Of a stretch of DNA of 64,000 nucleotides, positions 17,891-61,524 are shown piece by piece. Numbering within the stretch: the first letter of the stretch is position 1; each line of letters begins with the position of its first letter. The notes under the pieces were generated by a model that had not been told where the DNA came from, searched no databases, and was given only the letters and a program-made list of their open reading frames with translations. The DNA is from Histomonas meleagridis 2922-C6/04-290x (taxonomy: Eukaryota > Protista > Parabasalia): the NCBI GenBank assembly GCA_020184695.1, contig JAANOX010000237.1, positions 124,001 through 188,000 on the forward strand, written 5' to 3'. A program made the position numbers and the translations under genes.

Positions 17891-18760
17891 TTATAAATAA
17901 ATATTTCTTATATCTTCTCGTTCAAGAAGCATTTGAACTATTTTTGTATGACCATTTAATGATGGTAAAATAAGTGCTGTTTCAAATAATTTAAATAATT
18001 TCCAAATATTATTTTGAAATATGAAATTATAAAAAGAAATTTTAAATAAAACAAATAAATATTTTAAGCATTAACATCAAACCCTTCTTGTTCAAGAAGT
18101 AATTTAACTATTTCTGTATGACCATTCCAAGATGCTTCTATAAGTGCTGTATTAAATATTTTAAATAATTTCCAAATATTATTTTGAAAAATCAAATTAT
18201 TAAAATAAATTTTAATTAAAATAAATAAATATCTTTAGCATTAATATCAATTTTTTCTTGTTTAAGAAGTAATTTAACGATTTCTGTATATACATTTTTT
18301 GAAGCATTTGTAAGAACTACAAATATTTTGAAAAAAATTTTTAAAATTTTTATGAAACAATAAAACACTTTAATAAAAATCCAATCAAATAAACAAATAA
18401 TCTTGCTTAAATCGATAGATATATATCTATTGTTAATTAAATAGTTAGAAAGTTCTACATTTCCTGAAAAACCCGAAATTTTCAAAAAATCAATTGGAAT
18501 ATGATTATCGAAGCAATGATAATATTTTTATTCATCTCCATTCCTCTTTCAATCAAAAATGAAAGAATATCAAAATTACAACAAAAAATACATTTTTCTC
18601 CTAATTTTTCTAAATCATTAACCATTTCGATTTTATTCTTAGATAAATATTTAAAGATATTATTTCGATGAAATTCAATTGCAATTTCATATGTACTTTC
18701 GAATGATGAATGATTTTGTTCACACAAATGAATAATTTCTTCATTTCCATCTACATTTTT
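17891..18760 (-). pseudogene. Degenerate DUF3447-ankyrin paralogue (locus B)
   Basis: Fragments EEIIHLCEQNHSSFESTYEIAIEFHRNDIF and GNVELSNYL match the paralogues. Ankyrin unit at 18061-18150 has an in-frame TAA (NA*N). 5' half is missing. Confidence 0.8.
17981..18230 (-). other. Two arrays of 4 x (17-nt interruption + 1 codon) in locus B
   Basis: 18151-18230 retains K-D-G-N; 17981-18060 retains K-H-G-E. Each array is exactly 80 nt. Confidence 0.9.
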
Positions 18761-26070: not shown

Positions 26071-28069
26071 TTATAAAATATTTTTATCATTAATATCAAT
26101 TCCTTCTTGTTCAAGAAGTAATTCAACTATTTCTGTATGACCTTTTTCAGATGCACAAATAAGTGCTGTTTTAAATAATTTGAACAATTTCCAAATATTA
26201 TTTTGAAACAAAAAATTATTAAAAAAAAATTTTTAAATAAAACAAATGAATATCTTTAGCATTAATATCAATTCCTTCTTGTTCAAGAAGTAATTCAACT
26301 ATTTCTGTATGACCATTTAAAGATGCATTAATAAGTGCTGTATTAAATAATTTGAATAATTTCCAAATATTATTTTGAAACAAAAAATTATTAAAATAAA
26401 TTTCATTTTTAGCATTAATATCAATTCCTTCTTTTTCAAGAAGTAATTTAACTATTTCTGTATGACAATTTAAAGATGCATTAATAAGTGCTGTTTCAAA
26501 TAATTTAAATAATTTCCAAATATTATTTAAAAATCCAAAATTATTAAAATAAATATTAAATAAAACAAATGAATATCTTTAGCATTAATATCAATTCCTT
26601 CTTTTTCAAGAAGTAATTTAACTATTTCTTTATGACAACTTAAAGATGCATTAATAAGTGCTGTTTCAAATAATTTAAATAATTTCCAAATATTATTTTG
26701 AAATATAAAATTATTAAAATAAATTCTAAATAAAACAAATAAATATTTTTAGCATTAATATCAATTCCTTTTTGTTCAAGAAGTAATTTAACTATTTCTG
26801 TATAACCATTATTAGATGCTTTCATAAGTGCTGTTTCAAATATTTTAAATAATTTCCAAATAGTATTTTGAAATATCAAATTATTAAAATAAATATTAAA
26901 TAAAACAAATGAATATCTTTAGCATTAATATCAATTCCTTTTTGTTTTAAAACGTATTCAACAAGTTCAATATTTCTTGATCCAGATGAAAATACCAAAA
27001 TATTATTCGGTATTGAATGATCTTTAAGTAAATATTCAACTGAAAAAATATTTCCAATCGTTGCTGCTTCGTTAATAATATCATCATTGATTTTCATTCC
27101 TTCTTTAACTAAAAATGAAAATATTTCATAGTTATGATATGAAATACAAAGCTTTCCTAATTTTTCTAAATTATAAATTTTTTTTAATTTATTCTCATAA
27201 GTATATTTAAAGATATCATTTCGATGGAATTGAATTGCTATTTCATATGCATCTTCAAATGATGAATGATTTTGTTCACATAAATGAATAATTTCTTCAT
27301 TTCCACCTGCAATTGCATATTTTCCTGTATTTTCTACTTTTGCATTGTTCAAGAGTAAATATTTGAAGCATTTAATAGATCCAAAGAATGCTGAATAATC
27401 AATTAATGAAACATTATCTTCATTAATGAATGGACATATTTCATAGAGTGATGGTTCTATATATTGATCAAAATCAAAATTTGTTTGTGATGATATTTCT
27501 TGAAGTTTTTCTGTTTCATCATTTCGAATTATTTTCGCAATTTCATTTGGATTATGTCCTTCTCTAATTAATTTCTGATGTAATTCCCAATCATTCTTTG
27601 AAAGCTCTTCATAATTTGGTAAGGCACTTACATATTCCCTTAAATGAATTGCTAATTCTTCTTTAGACATATAATGTGCAAAATAAGCACTCTGGTTGTT
27701 TTTTACAATGTTCGGTTCAAGAAAATTATGTTCAATCATAGCTTCAAGAAGATAATATGATTCATGTGTATGCTCATTATTAAGAAATTGACCAAATATA
27801 TCAAATATATTGGATTTGATTTTATTACTCTCTTCAAATGTTCTTATTTCTTTTATAATATTCAAAAATAAATCTATATTATTATTTTTAATTACAAAGG
27901 AATAATATATCATTTGAATAATAATTAAATCATAAGATAAAGGATGGATTTCATCAAATTTATTGATTATTAAACCTAAAGATCTAGAGAAATTTTCTTC
28001 ATTCAAACCAAAAATTGCTTGATTTATTGATAGAAGTGTTTCCCAGTCGCAACCTTCCTTTGGCCTCAT
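26071..28069 (-). CDS. DUF3447-ankyrin repeat protein (locus A), interrupted by 19 short non-GT/AG segments
   Basis: ORF 26876-28069 encodes a DUF3447-like region and ends just after GIDINAKD. Five more 90-nt ankyrin units follow (26745-26834, 26575-26664, 26405-26494, 26252-26341, 26080-26169). The 3' end at 26071 is uncertain. Confidence 0.8.
26170..26914 (-). other. Five arrays of 17-nt interruptions with single-codon spacers (locus A)
   Basis: 26835-26914 (4 elements; NDGE), 26665-26744 (4; RYGE), 26495-26574 (4; NWGE), 26342-26404 (3; EFGN), 26170-26251 (4, one 19 nt in homopolymer runs; KFGK). Confidence 0.92.
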
Positions 28070-46259: not shown

Positions 46260-47144
46260 ATGGAAGAATCGTCAGATGACATAGAAGACTATATTGATTA
46301 TCAAGTTGAATGGGAGGACAGAAGTAATTGTGCTTGCAACATAGCATATTTTCCAGTTGGTGGGTTTTACATTATAAATCATTGGCGTAAAAAATTTTTG
46401 CGTCCAATTCTTTCAAACATAGCTTTTATCATTATATTTGCAGACTTAGTATTTGATCTTTATTATTCACTTAATTTTAAAGAGTATATAATTTCGCTAG
46501 TGTTTTGTTCACTTGCATTTTTAGCGACAGCTGTTTCATATTGGCTAATTATTGTTATAGGTCCGGGATATGTACCATATAACTGGAAGTTAACACATAA
46601 AAAGCGATTTACATGGAAAGAAAGGATGAATTATATCACAATATACGACCAACAAGTTCAATGTGCCAGAATGTCCGAAAGGCCAGCAAGGTCATCTTTT
46701 TCCTTGGATGCAAGAAGGTTTGTTCTTCGAGCAGATCATCTATGCATTTGGACAAATTCATGGATCGGATTTAAAAACCATCGTTACTTCATTTTATTTA
46801 CACTCTGGTTTGTTATTTATAGCTGTCTTTGGTTTGCTTGCAGATATAACTGGTATCTTTTAATTCCACAACTTCATTGGTATTATCTTATATCAGCTGC
46901 TTGTGCAATCGTTCTTATAACAGCTGCTAGTTATTCATTTTATTACTTGGTTAAGTCGTTGATAAATCTAAAAAATAACATCACGGGAATCGAAAAGTAC
47001 AATCGAAGGAACGTTAAAATGTACGATAAAGGCTGTATGAACAACTTTGAAGAAATCTTTGGAACAAGGAAGTGCATCATATGCTGGTGTAACCCTTTTT
47101 GTCCAGTTCCACGTGTCCATGATGGTTTTTATAATTCATATTAA
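46260..47144 (+). CDS. DHHC-family palmitoyltransferase, variant DHLC motif
   Basis: Four TM segments, GPGYVP, RADHLCIWTNSWIGFKNHRYF, ITGIE (TTxE-like), C-terminal YDKGCMNNFEEIFG. Confidence 0.88.
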   Translation: MEESSDDIEDYIDYQVEWEDRSNCACNIAYFPVGGFYIINHWRKKFLRPILSNIAFIIIFADLVFDLYYSLNFKEYIISLVFCSLAFLATAVSYWLIIVIGPGYVPYNWKLTHKKRFTWKERMNYITIYDQQVQCARMSERPARSSFSLDARRFVLRADHLCIWTNSWIGFKNHRYFILFTLWFVIYSCLWFACRYNWYLLIPQLHWYYLISAACAIVLITAASYSFYYLVKSLINLKNNITGIEKYNRRNVKMYDKGCMNNFEEIFGTRKCIICWCNPFCPVPRVHDGFYNSY

Positions 47145-47673: not shown

Positions 47674-50600
47674 TTACAAAAATCTTGCTCCAAAAAGAAA
47701 TGCTGGATTTGCTTCAGCAAATTTCGGTTTCGGTGCACCCCAACCACCAAATACTTGATGTGCTTGTTTTGTTTCTGATGCCAAAAGTTTTTCATCGTAT
47801 ATAATATCATTTTGCTTCTTAAGTAATTCCACAATATTTTTACAATTTTCATTACCTCCTTGATTTGAGTTTGCGAGCATAATTGCTGATTCACCGTTAT
47901 TATTTACTTCATTTATTTTTATATCTTTTTGTTGAAGAAGTAATTCTACGATTTCAAAACAACCATTTTGCGCAGCGCCCATTAAAGAATTCATAAATAA
48001 TTTTCATAAATTCCGAAGTTTTTATATAAATTTTAAAAAATTATAATAATTATTATTCTTATGATTTATATCGATTTCTTTATGATCGAGTAATAATTTA
48101 ACGATTTCCAAATGATTATTAAAACATGCTAACATAAAAGCAGTACCAAAATAATTAATTAAATTCCAAATTTTATCTATAAATTCCATTTTTTATTAAT
48201 AAACATATAATACTTATAATAAATACCATGAATGTCCAGATCAATTCCTTCATGTTCAAGTAATAGTTTAACTATATCTGTTCTTCCTTCTGAACAAGCA
48301 GTCATTAATGGTGTAAAATATATATATATTTAATTCCAAATATTGTTTTGATATAGAAATATTTTGAATCAATAATATAATGAAATAAATAAACAGATTT
48401 CACATTAACATTAACATCTTTTTTATCAAGAATTAACTTAAAGATTTCGAATTGATTCTTTTTAACTTCTTCAAAATTTGCTTTATTGTTAACAAATCAA
48501 TAAAATAAATCTTAACACGTGTAAATAAATTTGGCTTATTATTATCATTTCCTTGAGAATATTTCATATCGAAATGACATTGATCAGTTTTAGATGCACA
48601 ATGAGAATTCATAAAAATTATAAATAAATCAATTAACAAATAAAAAAACTCTAAATTATCAAAATTAATTCTAAACTCACAAAATGAACTTCGAAAAATT
48701 AAAGTAAACCAATTTGTTTTGATTTGGATTATAAAATGTATTATTATGTTTGTATAAAGACATTTTATGAAGTACAGTTTCAAATGATTGAATGAAATTC
48801 CAAATATTATTTCGAAATATTAAAAAGGCGGAACAAATCGTATTCAGAAGATTAACATCAATTCCTTTATGATCAAGAAGTAATTTAACAATTTCAACAA
48901 AACCTGCAATCGTTGCATACATTAAAGGTGAACCGAATGAATTAAATATATTTCACGAAATTTATCAATGAAATATTAAACTTAAGAAATGAATATCAAC
49001 AAAATTAACATCAATTTCTTTATGTTCAAGTAATAATTTAACAATATCAATGTAGTTATTACGTACAGCAAAAGTTAAAGCTGTTTCAAATAAATTAAAT
49101 TGTTTCCAAATAAAATTTAAAAACATAAAATTAATAAAATAAATTTTAAAACATATTATTAAATAGTTTTAGCATTAATATCAATATCTTTTTGTTCAAG
49201 AAGTAATTTAACAATATCAACACTGCCTTTCCATGTTGCAAAAATAAATGGGGTTTCAAAAAATGGAAACAATTTTTAAAAATATTTTAATATTATATTT
49301 ATTACATTTGTTAATATCAATTCCCTCAACATTAAGAAGAAGTTTCACAAGATCAACATTACCACTATTACATGCATAAAACAATGGCGTTAAAAAAACA
49401 ATAGACAAATTCCAAAGTTTGGAGTAAAACATTGAATTTATAAAACAAATATCGAACAAAAAAATGAAACATTTGCAATATTTATATCAATACCTTTACA
49501 TTCAAGAAGTAATTTGCATATTTTTATATAATTATTTTCAAATGCAAATGTTAATGCAGTTTTTCCTCTAGTATTTTGTTGTGAAATATCAATTCCTTTA
49601 TGTTGAAGAAGTAATTTAACTATTTTTGTATGACCATTTGAAGATGCTAAAATTAGCGCTGTATAAAATATTTGAAATAATTTCCAAATATTATTTTGAA
49701 ATATCAAATTATTATAATATATATTATTTTTAGCATTAACATCAATTCCTTCTTGTTCAAGAAGTAATTTAACTATATCTGTATTACCTTTATAAGATGC
49801 AAACATAATTGCTGTTTTAAATATTTTTAATAAATTCCAATAATTATTTTAAAATATTAAAATATTCAAATAAATAATATCTTTAGCATTAATATCAATT
49901 CCCTTTTGCTCAAGAAGCATTTTCACGTTTTCAATGTTATTTAAAGCACAAGCACAAAATAAAGGGGTTTTATAAAAGCACAAGAAACTCTACTAAATAT
50001 TCTCAACAAACATTAAAAAAACAAAAACAAATATCATAAATATTAACATTAATAGCTTTCCTCGATAAAACATATTTCACAAGTTCACTATTATTTGAAG
50101 AAACAGCATAAGCTATTGCATTATTTGGTAATGCTTTTCCTTCATAAAGATATCTTACAATGAATAAGTTACCACTTGCAAAAACTTCTTCAACGAATTG
50201 AGCATCATAAATATTAATTCCTTCATTTTCGATGAACAAAAAGATATCAAAGTTATCATATTGTATACATTTCGAACCCATATAATTTATTATTTTTATT
50301 TTCTTTTCTTCTTCACTTTCATTATTTCTCATTTGGTTCTGAGAAAATGTTATTGGATTTTGGAAGTTAAAATAACGCAGACATTTTCTTATAAACATAG
50401 TTCTTTCCTGATTATAATCGCATTTGAATAATTTATTTTCATATAGATAATAAAAGATATCATTTCGATGGAACTTAATTGCTGCTTTATAAGCGTTTCC
50501 AAATGTTACACCATTTTGTTCACATAAATGAATGATTTCAATGTTTCCACCTGCTACTGCATATTTACCAACATTTTCAATATAAGCACCATTAACTAAC

Positions 50601-51370
50601 AAATATTTAAAACATTTAATCGACCCATAAAATGCTGCATATTGGATTAATGTAACAGGATGTTCATCACAACTAAAACATTTGGTGAATTTCTCATAAA
50701 TTGATACTGGTAATGGCTCATCAATATCAATTTTATTGTTTGATATTATTTCTTGAAGTTGTTCAGCATCATCATTACGTATAGCTTTTGTGACTTCAGA
50801 AGGATTTCCTTCGTTCATGTTCTTTTTATGTTCTTCAAAATTACTTCCTTTTTGTTGACGAATGATTTCAATAGCTTTCTGTTCCCCAAAGGAGGGTTGT
50901 GCTTTTTGAGCTTGATTTTCAATTGATGAAATTTGTTCTTTTGTTAATAAATGAACAAAGTATATCTTGTTTTCTGGGTGATCAATAAATTGATCAGGTC
51001 TTATTAAATTATTTTCAACTAATTTAACTAATATAAAATTGGACTCTCTAATACCCACTGAAAGTAAATAACTTTTAAATAGTGAAAATATTTGTGGACT
51101 TTCTTTGAGAATTTCTTCTTCCTTTTTTTCAATAAATTGTAAATATTGTATATAGATATTTATATCTTTACGCTGTGATAGATATGATGAATAAATATTT
51201 CTTATTAGAACCAGATTAAATGAAATTGGAAAATTAGTATCAAATAAATCCATGGTTAATTGAACAGTCAATTCAATGTTTTCTTGATTTAAATCAAAAA
51301 GTAAATTACTAATATCTTGAAGATATTTGATTTCTTCTTTGGGATTTCTTGTTGTCATTTTGTTGTCCAT
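47674..51370 (-). CDS. DUF3447-ankyrin repeat protein (locus C), one gene interrupted by 42 short segments; 993 aa after removal
   Basis: 3697 nt minus 41x17 and 1x18 nt leaves 2982 nt = 994 codons, with no internal stop in my manual translation. This joins ORFs 50003-51370, 49438-49806, 49256-49459, 48677-48922, 48433-48783 and 47674-47994. Confidence 0.85.
47992..50032 (-). other. Twelve arrays plus one singleton of 17-nt interruptions (locus C)
   Basis: 49969-50032 (NSRK), 49816-49878 (INGK), 49663-49725 (NDGY), 49391-49470 (DNGL), 49255-49300 (KYKE), 49085-49164 (KYGE), 48932-48994 (NREG), 48779-48841 (TNGE), 48613-48709 (5 elements), 48494-48510 (single), 48315-48394 (YSGF), 48145-48224 (YGGG), 47992-48054 (NKGM). 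Confidence 0.9.
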
Positions 51371-51649
51371 TGCCTGAAAAAAACGTTAAAAAAGTGCCTT
51401 GGCATGGATTGCATAGCTTCTATCAGAGTAGTGTAAACGAAATTAATTCATATTTTTCTCTGAATGGAAATTAATAAATTCATTTTAGATATATAAAATA
51501 TCTCTTTATATATGTAGAGATTAATATTATCATTATCTAATATTGCAATGCCTTAATTAATATTTCGGAAATGAGGGAAAATCAATTCATTATGAAATTT
51601 TCTCAAATGAATATAGTTTCTCATGAAAATATCATTTTCAATTTGAATT

Positions 51650-52490
51650 TTGAAAATATTAAAAAAATCAACAAAATCAATTGATGAATTTGATAAAAAA
51701 TATGATTGGGAATTTCATAAACAATTAATTAAAAAAGGAGTAAATCCTAATGAAATTACAATAATAATTCGAAATTATGAAATAGAAAAACTTCAAGAAA
51801 TATCATCACAAAATGATTTTAAATTTTTGGATCAATTATATGTTTTAGATATTTAATTATGAATGGTGTTAAAGTCGGCAAATATTCATTTGCAGGTGGA
51901 AATGAAGTAATAATTCATTTATGTGAAAATAATAATGGATCATTTTATGAAGCAGCAATTGAATTTCATTGAAATGATATCTTTAAACACCTTTATGAAA
52001 ATAAAATTGTTAAAACGATAAATTTAGATTACTTATATAAGTAATGTATTGTCAATAATTCATTTAATTGTGTAGGAAGGATTGAATTTAGATTCTTTCA
52101 TATATGAATTATCATTGACTGGAATTTATATCTAATAAAATGTTTTCTTGAAAAATATAAACTACTAAATGATATTTATTTCATGAGCAAGTCCAGGAAA
52201 TATTGAACTTGTTGAATATTTTCTTAAATTTGAACAAACTGATATCAATGTTAGAAAAGTTTCTATAAAAAATTGGGAATTTGTTGATATGTCATTATAT
52301 TTAATATGAGTATTTGGCTATTTTTTATGTTTTTTGATATTTATTTGAAAAATTTTATACCCTTATATAATATTTGGAAATAATTTATATTATTTAATAC
52401 ATCAGTTATTAAAGCATTTAAAAATGCTCAAATAGAAATAGTTAAATTGCTTCTTGAACAAAAAGGAATTAATGTTAGCTGGAGGGTCAA
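51650..52490 (+). pseudogene. Degenerate DUF3447-ankyrin paralogue (locus E)
   Basis: WEFHKQLIKKGVNPNEI, GGNEVIIHLCE, AAIEFH*NDIF and GNIELVEYFL fragments with stops and frameshifts; one ankyrin unit starts at 52399. Confidence 0.8.
52259..52398 (+). other. Array of 7 x (17-nt interruption + 1 codon)
   Basis: 140 nt = 7 x 20. Retained codons GGA TAT GGC GAT TAT GGA AAT precede ACA (Thr). Confidence 0.85.
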
Positions 52491-52918
52491 AAAACCAACA
52501 TTTGTATAAATTTTAAAAATGCGATAAAATAGATATCATTGAGATCAGTAAATTTTTCAGAGGTACTAAAACTCAAAATCATGCAATATTTTTTCAACGA
52601 TAATTATATGTTAATAATGGCATCGGTAGGAGATTACAAAAATATTTTTGTTATGAAATTTTGACTGTTAAATCTTTCCAAATTCGATATGATTTCGACC
52701 ATACTTTTTTGGGAATTTTGTGATATTTCCTATATAGTAATATTGTATGTTAGATATGTTTATTTTCTAAATAATTATCTTGTATTATTTTTATTAAAAT
52801 TTAGAAAGTGTGGAACTCAATTTAAAAAAAAAAATTAATTGAAAAATTGTTATTCGAAAACTTAACTTTGGTTTATATGATGAGATAAAAAGATTTTATA
52901 TTTGTTGACTATAAGTTT

Positions 52919-54915
52919 TTACTGTTTATTGTTTTTTTCTTTATCATTGAATAATTTAACTATTTCTTCGTAACCTTTAATTGTTGCAATCATGAGTGGA
53001 GTTAATAATAATTTGCATGAATATCAAATATCAGTTTGAAACATAAAATTGATTAAATTAACACTAAATATAATAAATTGATAGTATAAGTATGAATTAC
53101 TATTCCCTCTTGTTCAAGTAATAGTTTAACAATTTCAGTTTTTCCACATTCACATGCAACTAAAAGAGCTGTTTGAAGAAAAATGAATAAAATCCAAATA
53201 TCATTTTGAAAAGTCATTTTTTACAATTAAATATTATATACTTTAAATATATATCTTTAGCATTAATATCAATTCCTTTTTGTTTAAGGAGCAATTTTAT
53301 AATGTCAATATGACCATATCTAGTTGCCAGCATTAAAGCTGTCCATAATAATTTATAAAAATTCCAAAACTTATTTTTAAGCATTAAATTATTCTATTAA
53401 ATATTGAACAAAATTTTAAAATATCTTTGTTATTAATATCAATGTCCTTTTGCTCAAGAAGTAATTTGACAACATCAGTACATCCATTAAGTGATGCATT
53501 CATTAAAGCTGTTTTAAATTCTTTGAATAATTTCCATTAACAATTTTAAAATATAAAGTTATTAAAATATATTTTGTTCAAAACGAATAAACATCGCTAA
53601 TATTTATATCAATTCCTTCTTGTTCAAGAAGCAATTTTACAATTTCTATATGACCATTTTTTGTAGCAATTATAAGTGCAGTTTGAAATAATATAAAGAA
53701 TTTCCAAATATTACTTAAAAACTTCACATGAGTAAAATTAAAACTTTTTTCATTTATATTAATACACTTTAGATCGATGACATATTTAACGAGTTCAACA
53801 TTTCCTGACAATGAAGAAAAAATTAAAATATCTTTCGGAACAGGTTTCTTATTAAGGAAATATTTAACAAGAAATATATTTCCAATATTAGCTGCTAAAT
53901 TAATAAATGATTCTTCAATATCCATACCTTCTTTTTCCAAAAAATAAAGAATTTGATAATTGTTACATTTAATACAAATTTTTCCCAGTTTGTTTATATT
54001 GTCAATTTTAGACATTTTATTCTCGTAAAGATAATGAAAGATATCATTTCGATGAAACAAAATTGCAGTTTCAATAGTTCCTTCGAAAGATAAATGATAT
54101 TGTTCACAAAGATGAAACATTTCTATGTTACCACCTGCAACAGCAAATATTCCTGAATTATAACTTGCTCCGTTTAGTAACAAAAATTTAAAACATTTAA
54201 TTGATCCAAAAAATGCTGCATAATCAATTAACGAAACTTTTTCTTGATTAATAAATGAACATCTTTCATAAATTGAAGGACAAATTATTTGATTAAAATT
54301 AAAATCATTTTGTGATGATATTTCTTGAAGTTTTTCTATTTCGTCATTTCGAATTATTTTTGCTATTTCATTCGGATTAACTCCTTCTTTAATTAATTGC
54401 TTATGAAGTTCCCAATTATTCTTTGATAGTTCTTTTATATTATCAAAGAAATCTCTACTATGGTAGTATCTAGCTAATCGAAAATCTTCAAATTCTTCAT
54501 TACTTAGAAAATGTGAAAAATAAAAAGATTTATGTTTTTTGCTTTTTATAACTTGAGATGTGATTAATTTATATTCATACAACTTTTCAAGAAGAAAATT
54601 AGATTCTTGAGAATCAGAGCAAAGAAGAATTGTTGTAAATATATGAATTAGCTTGAAATCATTTTTATTGATTTTTTCTTTTTCTTCAATTTCCTGGAGA
54701 AAATGAATACAAATATCGAATTCATTCACGTTTGAACTAAAGCTTAAAAGAAATAATTGACTTAGAACAGTATTGAATGAATATACTAAATTATCATCAA
54801 ATAAATTCATAATCGATTCAATTGATGAATTAAAATTATCTTTATTTAAGCCAAAAACAATTTGTTCCATCAGTAGTAAGATATCATCAGTGATATTTTG
54901 AAATGACGCCTTCAT
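52919..54915 (-). CDS. DUF3447-ankyrin repeat protein (locus D), interrupted by 19 short segments; 557 aa after removal
   Basis: 1997 nt minus 19x17 = 1674 nt = 558 codons. Ankyrin units at 53593-53682, 53423-53512, 53253-53342, 53083-53172, then a terminal unit ending at TAA 52919-52921. Confidence 0.85.
53003..53742 (-). other. Five arrays of 17-nt interruptions (locus D)
   Basis: 53683-53742 (60 nt, 3 elements, EGQ), 53513-53592 (KYGK), 53343-53422 (NNGW), 53173-53252 (NDGQ), 53003-53082 (SYDL). Confidence 0.9.
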
Positions 54916-55890: not shown

Positions 55891-55965
55891 AAAATTACAT
55901 GAAAAATAAATATTTGCAAAAAAAAAATAATCTATTTGAATAAAAGGTAACCTGCAAAAAACGGG

Positions 55966-58900
55966 TTGAGCGGCTTTGGTTTGCAACTTTATATTAAGAG
56001 TGCATGCAAGGAAATTTGTTTGGAAACAATTTATATTTTTGCCACTTTTTGTCCAATAAGAAAAAATAAGCGCAAAAAACAACAAATGATTACTTCATCA
56101 ACTAAATTCGATATTACTAAATACATGCATTCAGGTGCATCACAAGATGGAACACTATGTGCTAGTATGGTTGTTTTTTCGCAACTAAATCCAAGAGTAA
56201 ATCAATACCAACAAATCGGACAATTACCTCTTGTAATTAGTCGGAAATCCGCAAACTTAATGATTCTTGTCCTTGGTCCACAGAAGAAAATTCTGACCTA
56301 TGTACAAGTAACACAATCAATTAATTGGATTATTCAATCAAGTGTTTATTGCACATTTATTGATCAAAATAATGTCAGGTGTTTGGCTAGATTTAATACT
56401 GCTGAGGATGCTCAGTTTTTCACAATGATTGCTCTTTCCAAAAAAATCAACATCGGAATTAACAGTTATTGTATTGATCAAGGAAAAAACGATTTACAAA
56501 TTTGTAGTGATAATGAAAATATTTTAGTAAAAGTTAGAGTTTATGATCTAACATTACAAGCAGTTCATGAGGCAATCGACAAAATTGATAACTGTTATAT
56601 TGAAGATTCTATAACATTTCCCAATACAAAAATGAATGGGGTCTATGTAGCCCAAATTTCTCAGTCAATATTTGCTATAATGGAAATAGTTGGAAAGCAA
56701 ATGAAGGAAAAAAAGAAAAGCGGACTCTTTGGCTTCTTCGGTGTTGAAGAAGAAAATGATAATAGCGAAAGTGAAAGTGATTTATTCGGCTTTAATAGAA
56801 AAGAAAGAAATTCATCAGAAAATAGTTCAGAAGAAGAGGAAAATAACTTATTTGGATTTCATAAAAAAGTATCCAGAAAAATAGAGGAAGAAGAGGAAGA
56901 AGAAAATAGTGAAAGCGAAAGTAGTTTTAGAGGTAAACAGAAAAGAGTATATAGAAAAATAGAGGAAGAAGAAGAAAATAGTGAAAGCGAAAGTAGTTTA
57001 AGAGGTAAACAGAAAAGAGTATATCAAAGAATGGAAGAAGAGGAAGAAGAAGAAAACAGCCAAAGCGAAAACAATTTAAGAAGTAATCAGAAAAGAGTAT
57101 ATAGAAAAATAGAGGAAGAAGAGGAAGAAGAAGAAAATCTTGAAGAGGAAAATGAAAGAAGTAAAGAAGAAAATATGGAGGAAATCGAAGAGGAAAATGA
57201 GAATAAAGAGGAAGAAAATGAAGACGAAAATGATGATAAAGAAGATGATATTGAAGAAGATAAAGGTGAACATAGTGATGTTATAGAACATCAAGACAAC
57301 GAAGAAGAAATTGAAGACAAAAAAGAAGAAAATAAAGAAATAGAAAAAGAGAAAGAAGAAACTTCAGAAGAAGATAAAGAAGAAGTTGAAGAAGAATATA
57401 TGGAAGATAAAAATGAAATAAAAGAAAAAGAAACCAAAGAAGAAATTATCGAAGAAACGGAAGAGGAAGAAGTTAAAGAAGAAGAAAAGGAAGGTAAAAA
57501 AGATAAAGAAGAAGACAAAGAAGAAATTAAGGAAGAAATCCTAGAAAGAGTTAAAAAAGAGGAAGTTAAGAAAGATGAAAAAGAAAATATAAAAGAAGAA
57601 ACACAAGAAGAGGAAGATAAAGAAGAAACTAAAGAAAAAATTAAAGAAGATAAAGAAGGGGATGTTAAAGAGGAAGAAACTCAAGAAGAAGAAATTAAGG
57701 AAGATAAAGATGAATCTTCAAAAGTAGAAACTGAGGGAAATGAAGAAGAAATCAAAGAACATAAAGAAAGAAATCCAGAAGAAGTTAAAGAGGAAGAAAT
57801 TAAAGATAAAGAAGAAATATCAGAGGGTGAAATTAAAGAAGATAAAGAAAGAACTACAGAAGAAGAAATTGAAGAAGAAGAAACTAAAGAAGAGGAAACT
57901 AAAGAAAATAACAAAAAAATTAAAGAAAAAACTATAGAAGAAGTTAATGAAGATAAAAAAGAAAATAAAGAAGGAACACCAGAAAAAATTGAAGAAGAAG
58001 TTAAAGAAGAGGAAACTAAAGAAGATAAAGAAGAAACTAAAGAAGAAGTTAAAGAAGAAGAAGAAATTAAAGAAGAGGAAACTATCGAAGACAAAAAAGA
58101 AGAAACTAAAGAAGGAACACCAGAAGAAGTTGAAGAAGAAGTTAAAGAAGAGGAAACTAAAGAAGATAAAGAAGAAACTAAAGAAGAAGTTAAAGAAGAA
58201 GAAGAAACTAAAGAAGAAGTTAAAGAAGAAGAAGAAATTAAAGAAGAGGAAACTAAAGAAAGAACACCAGAAGAAGTGAAAGAAGAAGAGGAAACTAAAG
58301 AAGTTAAAGAAGAAGTTAAAGAAGAAGAAGAAACTAAAGAAGATAAAGAAGAAGTCAAAGAAGAAGAAATTAGAGAAGAGGAAACTAAAGAAGATGAAGA
58401 AGAAACTAACGAAGAAATTAAAGAAGAAGAAGAAACTAAAGAAGATAAAGAAGAAGAAGAAACTAAAGAAGAGGTTAAAGAAGAAGAAAAAGAAGAAACT
58501 AAAGAAGAATTTAAAGAAGAAGAAGAAATTAAAGAAGATAAAGAAGAGGTTAAAGAAGAAGAAACTAAAGAAGAAGTTAAAGAAGAAGAAGAAACTAAAG
58601 AAGATAAAGAAGAAGAAGAAATTAAAGAAGAGGAAACTAAAGAAAGAACACCAGAAGAAGTGAAAGAAGAAGAGGAAACTAAAGAAGATAAAGAAAATGA
58701 AATTGAAGAAGAAGAAATTAAAGAAGATAAAGAAGAGGTTAAAGAAGAAGAAACTAAAGAAGAAGTTAAAGAAGAAGAAGAAACTAAAGAAGTTAAAGAA
58801 GAAGAAGAAATTAAAGAAGAGGAAACTAAAGAAAGAACACCAGAAGAAGTGAAAGAAGAAGAGGAAACTAAAGAAGTTAAAGAAGAAGTTAAAGAAGAAG

Positions 58901-61524
58901 AAGAAATTAAAGAAGATAAAGAAGAAGTCAAAGAAGAAGAAATTAGAGAAGAGGAAACTAAAGAAGATGAAGAAGAAACTAAAGAAGAAGTTAAAGAAGA
59001 AGAAGAAATTAAAGAAGAGGAAACTAAAGAAAGAACACCAGAAGAAGTGAAAGAAGAAGAGGAAACTAAAGAAGATAAAGAAGAAGTCAAAGAAGAAGAA
59101 ATTAGAGAAAAGGAAACTAAAGAAGAGGTTAAAGAAGAAGAAGTTAAAGAAGAAGAAGAAACTAAAGAAGAATTTAAAGAAGAAGAAGAAGTTAAAGAAG
59201 AAGATAAAGAAGAGGAAACTAAAGAAAGAACACCAGAAGAAGTGAAAGAAGAAGAAGAAATTAAAGAAGAAACTAAAGAAAAAGCACAAAAAGAAGTGAA
59301 AGAAGAAGAAACTAAAGAAAAAACACCAGAAGAAATGAAAGAAGAAGAAGAAATTAAAGAAGATGAAACCAAAGAAAATAAAGAAAGAACGCCAGAAAAA
59401 GAAGAAGAAGTCAAAGAAGAAATTAAAGAAAATAAAGAAAAAGAAATTAAAGAAGAAGAAATTGAAGAAGAAGATAAAGAAGAGGAAACTAAAGAAAGAA
59501 CACCAGAAGAAGAAACTCGGGAAGAAATTATCAAAGAAGAGGAAACTGGAGAAAAGGAAGTTAAAGAAGATAAAGAAGCAAGAAAAGAAGAAGAAAATAA
59601 GGAAGAGGAAAATAAAGAAGAAATTAAAGAAAATAAAGAAAGAACACAAGAAGAAGTTGAAGAAGAAGAAACTAAAGAAGAAAGTAAAAATAAAGAAGAT
59701 GAAGTCAAGGAAGATAGAGAAGAAGAAAGAACTCCAGAAGAAGATGAAGAAGTTAAGGAAAATATAAAAGAAGAAGAAACTCTAGAAGAAAATAAAAATA
59801 AACAAGAAGAAATAAAAGAAAACGAAATTAAAAATAAATCTGATGAAGAAGAAGAAAAATCACCACCAAAAGAAAGTTCTGATGAAAAAACCAAAGATCA
59901 ATCAGAATCGTCTAAAGAAAACTCCGAAGCCGAAGCAAAAGGTAAATCTGAGCGGTCTAAAGAAAACTCCGAAGCCAATGAAGATAAATCTGAATCATCT
60001 AAAGAAAGTTCTGATGAAGAAACCAAAGATCAATCAGAATCGTCTAAAGAAAACTCCGAAGCCGAAGCAAAAGGTAAATCTGAATCGTCTAAAGAAAGTT
60101 CTGATGAAGAAACCAAAGATCAATCAGAATCGTCTAAAGAAAACTCCGAAGCCAATAAAGATAAATCTGAATCATCTAAAGAAAGTTCTGATGAAGAAAC
60201 CAAATACAAATCAGAATCGTCTAAAGAAAACTCCGAAGCCGAAGCAAAAGGTAAATCTGAATCATCCAACGGAAGTTCTGATGATAAATTCATCCAAATT
60301 CTGAGTGATGATGAAATTGGCACAAAAAAAACAACAAAACGTCGGAAGCCCGCTCCAAAGCATGACGACACCTCCGATGACTTCAGCGATCTCTTTGCCA
60401 AGCCAAAGAAGAAGAAGCAGCGAATATCACTTTTCGACGCAGATTTGACAGATTCGTCAACAGATGCATTTGATTTTGACTTCACCAAACCTGCTAAGAC
60501 TAAGTCTAAGAAACGTATCACGTTATTTGATGATATAATACCCTCGACAAAGCCCAAAAAGTCCAAAAAGAAATCGAAATCAAAATCCCGAAAGTCACTT
60601 TTTGATAGTATTGACGATAGCGCACCACCAGTCAAATCCACTGAATTACCTAAAGAAGAATTGAAAGCCGAAATCGGTTCTTCCGTAGAAAAAGTTCATA
60701 AGGATCTTGGCACTTTTGCCTATGTTGATAAAGCACAAAAGTTTACATCTGCTTCTGAACTTAGGCAATCAATGCGCTCACGATTTGCGCAACTTGAATC
60801 CCTTATCAAGTCCATTACTATTCAAGAGTGTAAAACTACACAACTTGATTTACCAAATATTGTACTCAAAGAAAGTATTCATAAATTAGTAAATGACATT
60901 AAATCCAAAGATGCGCGACTTAAACAAATGCAAATTCTTATCGATTTCCTTGACGAAACTACAACATCGACATTTGAAAAAGATGAAATTCTAAAAGAGC
61001 AGAAAAAGCGTCGAATGGAAATCAAAACAGAAGAAACGCGAACAGAATCCGCAATTTCGGAACTTGTCGAAGTGCAAAAAGTTGTAAATTCGCTCGAGCA
61101 AGAACTTTCTGATATTTCCATATCATTGCAACAATCGGAGAATGAACTTCGCGCGAAACACGAAGCGGAAATGTACCGAGAAGCGTCTGAAAGCATCGAA
61201 GAGCAAAAGCCGATCGAGCAGAAAATGATCGAAGCGAAGAATCGGAAAGTTAACATCGAAATAAAACTGATGCCATTACTTGACGAAAACAAGAAAATGA
61301 AAGAAAACGTCGACACGAAATCGCTTAAAGAAATTGAAGAACTGAAAAGTAACGCACCGAAAATGCTGAAGGAAGTCGTGCTCGAGATGAAGGAGGGACT
61401 GGAGGCGATGCTGGAAAGCGCGTTCAACCCATTGAGGGAATACGACGGAGATATGGTGGCAACGGCGGTGAAAAACGCGTTGAAGAAACAAGGAATGTTA
61501 TGTATGCAAAAGAGGAAAGTGTAA
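55966..61524 (+). CDS. Giant Glu/Lys-rich repeat protein with FKBP15-like N-terminal PH/WH1-type domain and C-terminal coiled coil
   Basis: 1852-aa ORF. N-terminal YCTFIDQNNVRCLARFNTAEDAQFF resembles FKBP15 YSTFYDDQRQNWSIMFESEKAAVEF (from memory). About 1000 aa of E/K repeats. True start probably MITSS. Confidence 0.8.
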   Translation: MSGFGLQLYIKSACKEICLETIYIFATFCPIRKNKRKKQQMITSSTKFDITKYMHSGASQDGTLCASMVVFSQLNPRVNQYQQIGQLPLVISRKSANLMILVLGPQKKILTYVQVTQSINWIIQSSVYCTFIDQNNVRCLARFNTAEDAQFFTMIALSKKINIGINSYCIDQGKNDLQICSDNENILVKVRVYDLTLQAVHEAIDKIDNCYIEDSITFPNTKMNGVYVAQISQSIFAIMEIVGKQMKEKKKSGLFGFFGVEEENDNSESESDLFGFNRKERNSSENSSEEEENNLFGFHKKVSRKIEEEEEEENSESESSFRGKQKRVYRKIEEEEENSESESSLRGKQKRVYQRMEEEEEEENSQSENNLRSNQKRVYRKIEEEEEEEENLEEENERSKEENMEEIEEENENKEEENEDENDDKEDDIEEDKGEHSDVIEHQDNEEEIEDKKEENKEIEKEKEETSEEDKEEVEEEYMEDKNEIKEKETKEEIIEETEEEEVKEEEKEGKKDKEEDKEEIKEEILERVKKEEVKKDEKENIKEETQEEEDKEETKEKIKEDKEGDVKEEETQEEEIKEDKDESSKVETEGNEEEIKEHKERNPEEVKEEEIKDKEEISEGEIKEDKERTTEEEIEEEETKEEETKENNKKIKEKTIEEVNEDKKENKEGTPEKIEEEVKEEETKEDKEETKEEVKEEEEIKEEETIEDKKEETKEGTPEEVEEEVKEEETKEDKEETKEEVKEEEETKEEVKEEEEIKEEETKERTPEEVKEEEETKEVKEEVKEEEETKEDKEEVKEEEIREEETKEDEEETNEEIKEEEETKEDKEEEETKEEVKEEEKEETKEEFKEEEEIKEDKEEVKEEETKEEVKEEEETKEDKEEEEIKEEETKERTPEEVKEEEETKEDKENEIEEEEIKEDKEEVKEEETKEEVKEEEETKEVKEEEEIKEEETKERTPEEVKEEEETKEVKEEVKEEEEIKEDKEEVKEEEIREEETKEDEEETKEEVKEEEEIKEEETKERTPEEVKEEEETKEDKEEVKEEEIREKETKEEVKEEEVKEEEETKEEFKEEEEVKEEDKEEETKERTPEEVKEEEEIKEETKEKAQKEVKEEETKEKTPEEMKEEEEIKEDETKENKERTPEKEEEVKEEIKENKEKEIKEEEIEEEDKEEETKERTPEEETREEIIKEEETGEKEVKEDKEARKEEENKEEENKEEIKENKERTQEEVEEEETKEESKNKEDEVKEDREEERTPEEDEEVKENIKEEETLEENKNKQEEIKENEIKNKSDEEEEKSPPKESSDEKTKDQSESSKENSEAEAKGKSERSKENSEANEDKSESSKESSDEETKDQSESSKENSEAEAKGKSESSKESSDEETKDQSESSKENSEANKDKSESSKESSDEETKYKSESSKENSEAEAKGKSESSNGSSDDKFIQILSDDEIGTKKTTKRRKPAPKHDDTSDDFSDLFAKPKKKKQRISLFDADLTDSSTDAFDFDFTKPAKTKSKKRITLFDDIIPSTKPKKSKKKSKSKSRKSLFDSIDDSAPPVKSTELPKEELKAEIGSSVEKVHKDLGTFAYVDKAQKFTSASELRQSMRSRFAQLESLIKSITIQECKTTQLDLPNIVLKESIHKLVNDIKSKDARLKQMQILIDFLDETTTSTFEKDEILKEQKKRRMEIKTEETRTESAISELVEVQKVVNSLEQELSDISISLQQSENELRAKHEAEMYREASESIEEQKPIEQKMIEAKNRKVNIEIKLMPLLDENKKMKENVDTKSLKEIEELKSNAPKMLKEVVLEMKEGLEAMLESAFNPLREYDGDMVATAVKNALKKQGMLCMQKRKV
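56875..59870 (+). repeat. Purine-rich coding repeat tract (GAA/AAA-based EEETKEEVK and ERTPEE modules)
   Basis: Shuffled modules such as GAAGAAGAAACTAAAGAAGAAGTTAAA and GAAAGAACACCAGAAGAAGTGAAA; plus strand overwhelmingly A/G. Confidence 0.95.
59872..60270 (+). repeat. Nine-unit 45/45/42-nt coding minisatellite (order A B C A B A C A B)
   Basis: A=ESSDEETKDQSESSK, B=ENSEAEAKGKSESSK, C=ENSEANEDKSESSK; 7x45 + 2x42 = 399 nt. Confidence 0.9.

Follow-up and report, generated by a model that had tools for sequence, protein, structure and literature searches.

Tiny spliceosomal introns measure 15-16 nt in Stentor, about 25 nt in Paramecium and 18-21 nt in chlorarachniophyte nucleomorphs. Those of ciliates and nucleomorphs carry GT-AG ends and a branch A (PMC9505925, PMC6009652). 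The elements described here, which interrupt ankyrin genes in a 64-kb stretch of the Histomonas meleagridis genome (the window), resemble them in being very short, nearly fixed in length and removed at the RNA level, with the whole intron lying inside the footprint of the machinery. Unlike them, the elements of 17 nt (112 of the 114 loop elements) never end in AG (0/112; TT in 90/112, AC in one) and start with GT in 26/112, the other common starts being AT (59/112) and AA (15/112). They also stand up to four or five in a row with single codons between them, and within the window they are seen only in ankyrin genes. In T. vaginalis, the active introns number only 63; they start with GT, have (T)CTAA as their branch motif and end in AG (PMC12316389). 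Its type B introns (23-25 nt) share with the elements the phylum, a very short length, a T-rich interior and an intron-poor genome, but the elements lack CTAA (0/112) as well as AG.

Euglenid nonconventional introns vary in length, and their ends can often pair. Like these and other introns without GT-AG ends (e.g. in Fritillaria), the elements are removed from RNA; unlike the euglenid introns they are fixed at 17 nt and have no conserved fold that we could find, RNAalifold predicting 0 pairs on 20 loops, a setting in which AU-only helices score poorly. Bypass elements (T4 gene 60, the byps of Magnusiomyces mitochondria) and ciliate IESs are likewise short frame-breaking inserts that are invisible in the protein. 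However, a bypass element is retained in the mRNA and an IES is eliminated at the DNA level, whereas the present elements are in the DNA and absent from RNA. In the classical model for yeasts and other eukaryotes, introns are lost precisely by recombination with reverse-transcribed mRNA. The Histomonas repeats resemble this in the exact, scar-free absence of whole elements from paralogues and in the joint loss of neighbouring elements above chance, but the empty boundaries show no 3' bias along the gene. In the literature on 17-nt, tiny or non-canonical introns in parabasalids, we found no description of this system. On balance, we think it probable that the elements are micro-introns, that the full loop is ancestral and that exact secondary losses produced the emptier loops.

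Loops and elements of the ankyrin genes

Pfam DUF3447 and Ank were matched on the 455-aa N-terminal ORF of locus C. The gaps between its 30-codon ankyrin cores measure 12, 46, 63, 64 or 80 nt, which corresponds to four codons with 0, 2, 3 or 4 elements added, each 17 nt long apart from one of 18 nt. Removal of 42 curated elements (41 of 17 nt, one of 18 nt) leaves a 2982-nt CDS that forms one ORF with zero internal stops, in which canonical xxGx loops return. The earlier note had reported 0, 2, 3 or 4 elements per four-codon loop, and every loop it named is found at its place, on the minus strand (Table 1). The layouts also agree with it that boundary 1 is empty in loops 2, 3, 9 and 13 and in one loop of locus A. 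As to which element is missing, class assignment bears the note out for loop 2, for the locus A loop and, in the remaining boundary-1 loops, for most elements; in the boundary-3 loops (1 and 8) and the two-element loop 6, the boundaries are empty by layout alone, that of loop 8 being set by frame and element ends and not by element class. Its statement that the boundary before the conserved Thr is never filled holds for regular loops, is ambiguous for loop 11 and fails for the five-element array, where all five are filled. Loop 1 is 64 nt long because its first element has 18 nt.

Table 1. Element-bearing features of the window (e1-e4, element classes; codons in one-letter amino acid code)
Feature	Positions	Strand	Length (nt)	Codons	Elements and layout
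Locus C, ankyrin/DUF3447 gene	47674..51370	-		993 once elements are removed	42 elements
Loop 1	49969..50032	-	64	N,S,R,K	50015-50032 (18 nt), 49995-50011, 49972-49988; boundary 3 empty
Loop 2	49816..49878	-	63	I,N,G,K	49859-49875, 49839-49855, 49819-49835, classed e2, e3, e4; boundary 1 empty
Loop 3	49663..49725	-	63	N,D,G,Y	49706-49722, 49686-49702, 49666-49682; boundary 1 empty
Loop 4	49561..49572	-	12	T,R,G,K	zero
Loop 5	49391..49470	-	80	D,N,G,L	four
Loop 6	49255..49300	-	46	K,Y,K,E	49278-49294, 49258-49274; boundaries 1 and 2 empty
Loop 7	49085..49164	-	80	K,Y,G,E	four
Loop 8	48932..48994	-	63	N,R,E,G	48978-48994, 48958-48974, 48935-48951; boundary 3 empty
Loop 9	48779..48841	-	63	T,N,G,E	48822-48838, 48802-48818, 48782-48798; boundary 1 empty
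Five-element array, degenerate repeat	48613..48709	-		E,R,R,L	five of 17 nt around the codons
Lone element	48494..48510	-	17		omitted exactly (17 nt) in an RNA-run X5 contig
Loop 11	48315..48394	-	80		four; last one placed within a 3-nt ambiguity
Loop 12	48145..48224	-	80	Y,G,G,G	four
Loop 13	47992..48054	-	63	N,K,G,M	48035-48051, 48015-48031, 47995-48011; boundary 1 empty
Loop 14	47890..47901	-	12	N,N,G,E	zero
Locus A	26170..26914	-	80, 80, 80, 63, 82		five loops
Two further loops	17981..18230	-	80 each		four each
Locus D	53003..53742	-	60 (one), 80 (four)		five loops
Array	52259..52398	+	140		three extra 20-nt modules, then a regular 80-nt loop

At locus A, the 63-nt loop (26342-26404) is without e1 and its elements score high as e2, e3 and e4, while the 82-nt loop has an e2 of 19 nt with a T run. 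The core between the two loops at 17981-18230 holds an in-frame TAA, and this locus is a probable pseudogene. The 60-nt loop of locus D (53683-53742) has three elements and three codons; we had considered it as a 63-nt loop and dropped this, as the core alignment sets its length at 60 nt. The gene holding the 140-nt array looks broken. An HMM of the 30-codon core, run on the window and the first relatives, gave inter-core distances of 80 nt (20 times) and 63 nt (5 times) and also of 12, 46, 64, 60, 82 and 140 nt, equal to 12 + 17k nt in nearly every case. Elements are carried in three independent metagenome assemblies. All loops are full in relatives L003, L004 and L128, and 10 of 12 are full in L126; L127 has two 63-nt loops. 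The 60-nt loops (that of locus D and two in L126) miss e1 together with one codon. The note was right that elements are exactly present or absent at codon boundaries, and differences of 20 nt (element plus codon) occur as well. Another Histomonas ankyrin locus, L005, has only element-free loops of 12-15 nt, an outgroup-type state, and a T. foetus homologue is annotated as an ankyrin protein without interruption. Gene finders miss the system, splitting the ankyrin genes into fragments, as seen in the ORFs of the window and in the gene calls on relatives. An exact-protein look-up of two window ORFs, made for strain comparison, found neither on record.

Signals common to the elements are weak: R at position 1, TTT at 2-4 (5' consensus RTTTA), mostly A at 14 and TTT or TTC at 15-17. 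Their interiors are conserved, more so than synonymous sites. The pattern e3-GGA-e4 has 11 matches in the window versus 0 in 100 shuffles, which together with the stop-free 993-codon ORF excludes a chance origin of the loop pattern. The same pattern matched at least 120 loci in JGI metagenomes; no ankyrin core was among the matches listed, and we set these aside as chance hits. A PWM search of the 64-kb window found no element outside ankyrin genes. Five PWM candidates in non-ankyrin genes were all false, because the downstream ORF extends upstream in its own frame. Intact ORFs are not depleted of element-like 17-mers (41 observed versus 35.8 expected at 8 bits). A hand-proposed e3/e4 helix around GGA has 66% paired cells versus 61% in shuffles, a marginal difference. 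These fold results bear on bulge-helix-bulge (tRNA-type) and IRE1-type unconventional introns, whose two cut sites are presented by a conserved RNA structure; AU-only helices score poorly in such predictions. An Rfam scan of the window gave no match, hence no snRNA to set against the element 5' consensus. The elements do not conform to U2-type GT-AG introns (GT or GC at the 5' end, AG at the 3' end), and shifting their boundaries over repeated bases creates no GT-AG. Nor do they match parabasalid introns (T. vaginalis type A/B), which carry ACTAAC or TCTAA as a branch motif near their 3' AG, or U12-type AT-AC introns (ATATCC at the 5' end, AC at the 3' end, TCCTTAAC branch site). A single conventional intron per loop was rejected, as several loops are without GT and RNA retains the inner codons.

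Elements in DNA and RNA

We compared RNA runs from one study (P2, 2023) with DNA runs from another (P1, 2021); the kinds of run were guessed. Exact junction letters are available at one loop and exact missing lengths at two more places, and the other loops contribute break points and word shares. At loop 13, an RNA-run X3 contig joins 47994 to 48050 with TCCT between, so that the four codons alone remain and three 17-nt pieces are gone, whereas a DNA contig is colinear across 47928-48294. At 48494, an X5 contig has a 17-nt deletion that DNA run X1 does not show (depth 0 of 1707), and X3 and X4 contigs keep this element. At 52260-52314, a contig of X5 misses 51 nt and retains 52315-52398; an unspliced RNA-run contig is present at 52230-52344. 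Partly processed RNAs therefore exist, as the kept element at 48494 and the retained stretch 52315-52398 demonstrate.

Elsewhere, RNA contigs depart from colinearity exactly at element starts, while DNA-run contigs run colinear through the loops. The departures fall at 50032 in loop 1 (contigs from three runs), at 49470 and 49393/49394 in loop 5, at 49293 in loop 6 (one contig; the element start plus 2 ambiguous bases) and at 48612/48613 at the five-element array (three runs). On restriction to the repeat part, the word share goes from 0.91 to 0.90 in DNA runs and from 0.66/0.62 to 0.43/0.45 in RNA runs, the exon-only prediction being 0.673 to 0.447. In the intergenic stretch 51372-51699, RNA-run depth is about 10-fold below that of the gene, and in DNA runs the two depths are similar in order of magnitude. 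Because RNA-run contigs are without the elements and DNA-run contigs have them, the elements are removed from RNA. The intron-like nature proposed in the note is supported by contigs that omit the elements exactly and by word shares that drop as predicted. In the broad sense the elements are introns, present in DNA, absent from mature RNA and exactly joined across. They do not stay in translated mRNA as in bypass or recoding, and they are not eliminated from DNA as ciliate-type IESs are, no deleted form being present at 48494 in the DNA run; homology also places the organism among the parabasalids.

If the RNA evidence holds genome-wide, very many 17-nt pieces would be removed without any canonical splice signal, leaving single-codon exons, which would exceed what current intron-recognition models allow. 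On the reading we favour, the elements are intervening sequences: each is cut from the transcript and the single codons on either side are joined, which makes the elements micro-introns with 3-nt exons. Their place is the beta-hairpin loop of the ankyrin repeat, where as many as four codon boundaries in succession carry them. A heavily modified spliceosome or another cut-and-join enzyme system might carry out the excision. A more specific version, which we put forward only tentatively and hold to be doubtful, is a length-measuring RNA cut-and-join system with class-specific 17-nt recognition and possibly trans-acting guides, not a conventional spliceosome; the exact presence/absence pattern would then record that partly processed RNA has flowed back into the genome. 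Such a system would explain the conserved interiors, the ignored look-alikes in other ORFs and the single-codon exons.

Ancestry of the loops and direction of change

The four loop positions hold four classes, e1-e4, that are common to several genes and the metagenome relatives. In a leave-one-gene-out test, 107 of 136 elements were assigned to the correct class (P about 3e-39), with 11 of 16 at locus C. Because the classes are position-specific and the relatives mostly full, the full loop is the best ancestral candidate, with exact, secondary loss the preferred account of the emptier loops. Wherever direction can be judged, comparison of the repeats suggests loss over gain, most clearly for e1 at 26342-26404. 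This e1-less loop is nested among near-identical units that bear e1, a class common across genes; its unit 26404 is sister to the four-element unit 26574, which has e1 (support 95/87). Three bases beside the e1-less site differ from those of neighbouring units, an observation more in keeping with conversion from another donor than with a simple fresh deletion. The cores flanking loop 4 (TRGK) cluster with four-element units in the repeat tree (support 89/91), and loops with all four boundaries empty number 2 against 0.024 expected if boundaries were independent. The tree (180 nt) is mostly unresolved, with 2 of 28 branches starred, so that it lends weak support to any direction at boundary 3 and in the empty loops. 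The element-free L005 means that TRGK and NNGE could be primitively empty.

The full 80-nt loop is probably ancestral to the repeat family and would have spread through repeat and gene duplication. Loops with three, two or no elements would follow from exact deletion of whole elements, the four codons being left. Most likely, a transcript that was processed in full or in part would have been copied into DNA, and this copy would have entered recombination or gene conversion, with conversion or duplication among repeats afterwards. The earlier note had offered reverse-transcribed RNA as a route. It agrees with the exactness, with the existence of partly processed RNAs and with the surplus of fully empty loops, and we regard it as plausible rather than demonstrated. 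For single elements to be lost 3 nt away from kept ones, the templates would have to be partly processed or the conversion tracts very short. Once emptied, a loop can also spread through gene conversion between repeats; since loop types spread in this way or by repeat duplication, the listed cases would not be independent events, and independent events may be few. Our view that change generally ran towards loss is inferred, and so are the route by reverse transcription and the machinery of excision. The pattern provides an evolutionary handle in which elements act as discrete, exactly removable units, and it speaks for many copies having been made of a single ancient four-element loop. Similar repeats with 0, 2, 3 and 4 elements are natural 'deletion mutants' for studying the mechanism and order of removal.

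Alternative explanations

The opposite direction would have loops initially empty, as they are in other parabasalids, and filled boundary by boundary, via reverse splicing or codon-boundary insertion, those with 0, 2 or 3 elements being earlier stages. The short loops of L005 and the uninterrupted T. foetus homologue imply that the system was gained once in this lineage, the additional 20-nt modules at 52259-52398 are in keeping with addition, and the nested patterns 0011, 0111 and 1111 suit stepwise gain and stepwise loss equally. However, pattern 1101 misfits an ordered build-up, and the e1 class predates the array of locus A, one unit of which is without it. Position-specific classes common to genes and relatives argue for one ancestral full loop that was copied and not for repeated insertion, and the 64 kb yielded no element outside ankyrin genes. 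We therefore consider stepwise gain unlikely. Precise gain or loss, as the note had it, is supported in part, as loss where the classes and the nested 26342-26404 loop allow a judgement; codon-boundary-targeted insertion found no support.

The differing studies and guessed run kinds would allow the RNA contigs to come from another genome, the elements being absent from the DNA of part of the population or of the RNA-source strain. Against this, RNA libraries contain both forms (48494-48510 kept in X3/X4 and gone in X5; the unspliced contig at 52230-52344), the 17-nt deletion has zero depth in the DNA run, and three independent metagenome assemblies carry elements. Dozens of exact deletions per gene in a sister strain would also be far-fetched, and we judge this explanation very improbable. 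Least credible of all is that the elements stay in mRNA and are skipped by the ribosome, or mark decaying pseudogenes or assembly errors. A fixed length and phase-0 placement can be read as hints of bypass, and the in-frame stop at 17981-18230 and the broken-looking gene at 52259-52398 as hints of decay. Yet RNA contigs are without elements and word shares match removal, the 993-codon ORF has its canonical xxGx loops restored, element interiors are conserved, and the same architecture recurs in independent assemblies.

Loop lengths and element occupancy

A profile HMM built from eleven 30-codon ankyrin cores was used to measure core-to-core distances across the window and related contigs. A distance of 80 nt is the commonest by far, then 63, 46 and 12 nt, with isolated cases of 64, 82, 60 and 140 nt; distances reading 77 or 74 are 80-nt loops in which the core boundary is shifted. 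With few exceptions a loop consists of four codons and 0, 2, 3 or 4 elements of 17 nt (e1 to e4, named by loop position). The length is 17 nt in 112 of 114 loop elements. One exception has 18 nt (table); the other, the second element of loop 26170-26251, has 19 nt with a run of nine T, and could be a genuine length variant or result from a homopolymer error in the long-read assembly. The third loop codon is GGN (Gly) in 27 of 33 loops, matching the expectation for the ankyrin hairpin xxGxT. Subtraction of 42 curated elements from the ankyrin/DUF3447 gene 47674-51370 (locus C) yields a single stop-free ORF of 993 codons, and the pattern e3-GGA-e4 has 11 matches in the window versus 0 in 100 shuffles. 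The loop-element observation is real and far beyond chance.

An earlier note described scarless presence or absence of elements at individual codon boundaries. All stretches it named are present on the minus strand, and reading the sequence gives the same occupancies: five 63-nt loops lack the element at boundary 1, two loops lack the one at boundary 3, and 49255-49300 lacks those at boundaries 1 and 2, while the TRGK (49561-49572) and NNGE (47890-47901) loops carry zero elements. Exact presence or absence of an element describes most loops, but not the 60-nt loops (53683-53742 and two in contig L126), which lack e1 and one codon, nor 52259-52398, which has three extra 20-nt modules. Copy number thus also differs for a 20-nt unit made up of one element and one codon.

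Shifting the first element of the 60-nt loop at 53683-53744 by 2 nt upstream leaves the product unchanged; the element then has the consensus GTTT start and lies inside a codon (phase 1). On this placement, elements may not strictly need phase 0. Two ankyrin loci look damaged and keep regular elements: 17981-18230 carries a TAA in frame within a core, near 18066, and the plus-strand DUF3447 gene 51571-52500 has its N-terminal part split across several frames.

Length-variant element of the window and loops of related metagenome contigs
Feature	Position	Strand	Description
18-nt element	50015-50032	-	accounts for the 64-nt loop
L003			six loops, all 80 nt
L004			two loops, 80 nt
L128			three loops, 80 nt
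L126			ten 80-nt loops and two 60-nt loops
L127			two 63-nt loops without e1; ORF P0091 starts reading into a third loop

Removal of elements from RNA

Reads were compared as Logan contigs of three runs labelled 'RNA?' (X3, X4, X5) and one labelled 'DNA?' (X1), with much paralogue noise. In the intergenic stretch 51372-51699, RNA-run depth is about 10-fold below that of the gene and DNA-run depth is similar in magnitude to that of the gene, indicating that the 'RNA?' runs really are RNA-enriched libraries. Exact evidence comes from three places (47994/48050, 48494 and 52260-52314). In one X3 contig, 47994 and 48050 are separated only by TCCT; including two ambiguous T's, the junction is CAT TCC TTT ATT on the plus strand, which corresponds to the codons N, K, G and M after removal of three 17-nt pieces. 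An X5 contig lacks exactly 17 nt at 48494, a deletion with 0 of 1707 depth in the DNA run. An X5 contig also has 4 letters in place of the 55 nt of 52260-52314, so that 51 nt are gone. RNA contigs cease to be colinear precisely where an element begins, at 50032 (three runs), 49470, 49393, 49293 and 48612 (three runs), while DNA contigs are colinear across loops (47928-48294 and 49322-49614).

As a second, quantitative check, we determined the share of sampled 31-mers present in each run. Over the whole gene it is 0.91 for DNA and 0.66/0.62 for RNA; over 47890-50032 only, it is 0.90 and 0.43/0.45. The 31-mers touching no element make up 0.673 of the gene and 0.447 of the repeat part, an exon-only prediction that the RNA shares track, with the DNA shares unchanged. 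Together, the run contigs and the 31-mer shares rule out ribosomal bypass, dead genes and assembly artefact, the last of which the earlier note had named as one explanation that would undo its claim. Removal from RNA is the only reading that fits, and the elements are intervening sequences of an unusual kind.

Removal is incomplete and possibly ordered. Element 48494-48510 is kept in X3 and X4 contigs and removed in X5, one X5 contig has lost the three 5' elements of the 140-nt array and retains the regular loop 52315-52398 that follows, and one contig over 52230-52344 is unprocessed. The first element of the retained loop begins with T, not A or G.

Gain or loss of elements

The four loop positions form four distinguishable classes, with 107 of 136 elements assigned to their own position when the tested gene is left out. 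Because these classes are common to genes and assemblies, they point to one ancestral four-element loop copied with the repeats, not to repeated insertion. The earlier suggestion of precise intron gain or loss stands as to exactness and intron-like character, with loss favoured; codon-boundary-targeted insertion is opposed by the shared classes. The presence/absence pattern matches classical precise intron loss.

The earlier note proposed mapping occupancy on a phylogeny of the 90-nt cores; the tree used here, of 180 nt, is mostly unresolved. In this tree, the unit of the 63-nt loop 26342-26404 (locus A) is sister to a four-element unit with very short branches (95/87), its e2, e3 and e4 are kept with very high class scores, and the missing e1 is of a class found in other genes and relatives, which together indicate a change from four to three elements. 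The unit with the TRGK loop groups, at moderate support (89/91), with units most of which carry four elements. Locus C stands out: 9 of its 13 regular loops are short of at least one element, whereas full loops predominate in the other window genes and in every relative but L127. Empty boundaries cluster, with two fully empty loops versus 0.024 expected under independent boundaries. These observations agree with loss by way of a template that had already been stripped of elements, and partly processed RNAs could be the source of single-element loss. Alternatively, emptiness could be the primitive state of the empty loops. Loops of the 63-nt type are also found in L127, so this type is old; it may spread by duplication or gene conversion, and the three bases that differ beside the e1-less site of locus A fit conversion from another donor. 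The cases listed in the earlier note are therefore not independent events. No 3' bias of empty boundaries was seen along the gene. Exact loss from an ancestral loop with all four elements is the best reading of the scarless differences, with cDNA and conversion as candidate routes.

Element sequence, relatives and gene content

A consensus pooled from 80 full-loop elements begins with a purine (A or G in 76) followed by T at positions 2-4; A predominates at position 14, and the last three positions, 15-17, are T, with C sometimes at 17. Of the 112 17-nt loop elements, just 26 start with GT, and none has an AG 3' end or contains CTAA, the branch motif of parabasalids; boundary shifts permitted by repeated bases do not restore GT-AG ends. 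No consensus fold of the loops was found, and pairing in a proposed e3-e4 helix is barely above shuffles. Element-like 17-mers are not depleted on the sense strand of 20 intact window ORFs of at least 250 codons (41 observed versus 35.8 expected at 8 bits), so recognition must use more than the weak consensus. Using full loops of the window, L126, L128 and L004, overall between-gene likeness is 0.62 for element interiors (positions 5-13) versus 0.55 for third codon positions of flanking cores; for L126 versus locus A, the values are 0.80 for interiors, 0.66 for third and 0.75 for first and second codon positions. This suggests that the element sequence itself is constrained. No elements were found outside ankyrin genes in the 64-kb window.

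The nonconventional introns of euglenids are non-GT-AG like the elements, but their lengths vary. Nucleomorph (18-21 nt) and ciliate (15-25 nt) introns (in part PMC9505925, PMC6009652) and T. vaginalis type B introns (23-25 nt; PMC12316389) are near in size, but have GT-AG ends and a branch site. None of these systems is known to combine a fixed 17 nt, no AG, arrays of single-codon exons and restriction to one protein loop, and we did not find the system described in literature on 17-nt, tiny or non-canonical introns in parabasalids.

Homologues of the N-terminal domain were found in ENA metagenome assemblies, where their ORFs end at the start of the first loop. L126 and L001, the latter from a second sample, have identical first loops. 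L003 is more distant, with mostly G-initial elements and only generic ends in common. The system is common to a group of related organisms; it was not seen in one Histomonas ankyrin locus (L005), whose loops are 12-15 nt with zero elements, or in the one T. foetus homologue looked at, whose annotation is that of an ankyrin protein without interruptions. At 5100-5700 of L005 the Histomonas homologue ends in tandem repeats (unit about 60 nt) with single-base length differences among copies that look like long-read indel errors.

The window is AT-rich (28% G+C) and its host an intron-poor parabasalid; the top named relatives of the DHHC ORF 46260-47144 are from Trichomonas vaginalis (43%) and Tritrichomonas foetus (38%). 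DUF3447 and ankyrin domains lie in a 455-aa ORF (50003-51370, minus strand). The 1857-codon ORF 55951-61521 lies in a stretch of extreme strand asymmetry, where GC skew reaches 0.59 and AT skew 0.71; it is overlapped by long antisense ORFs and probably encodes a low-complexity purine-rich repeat protein.
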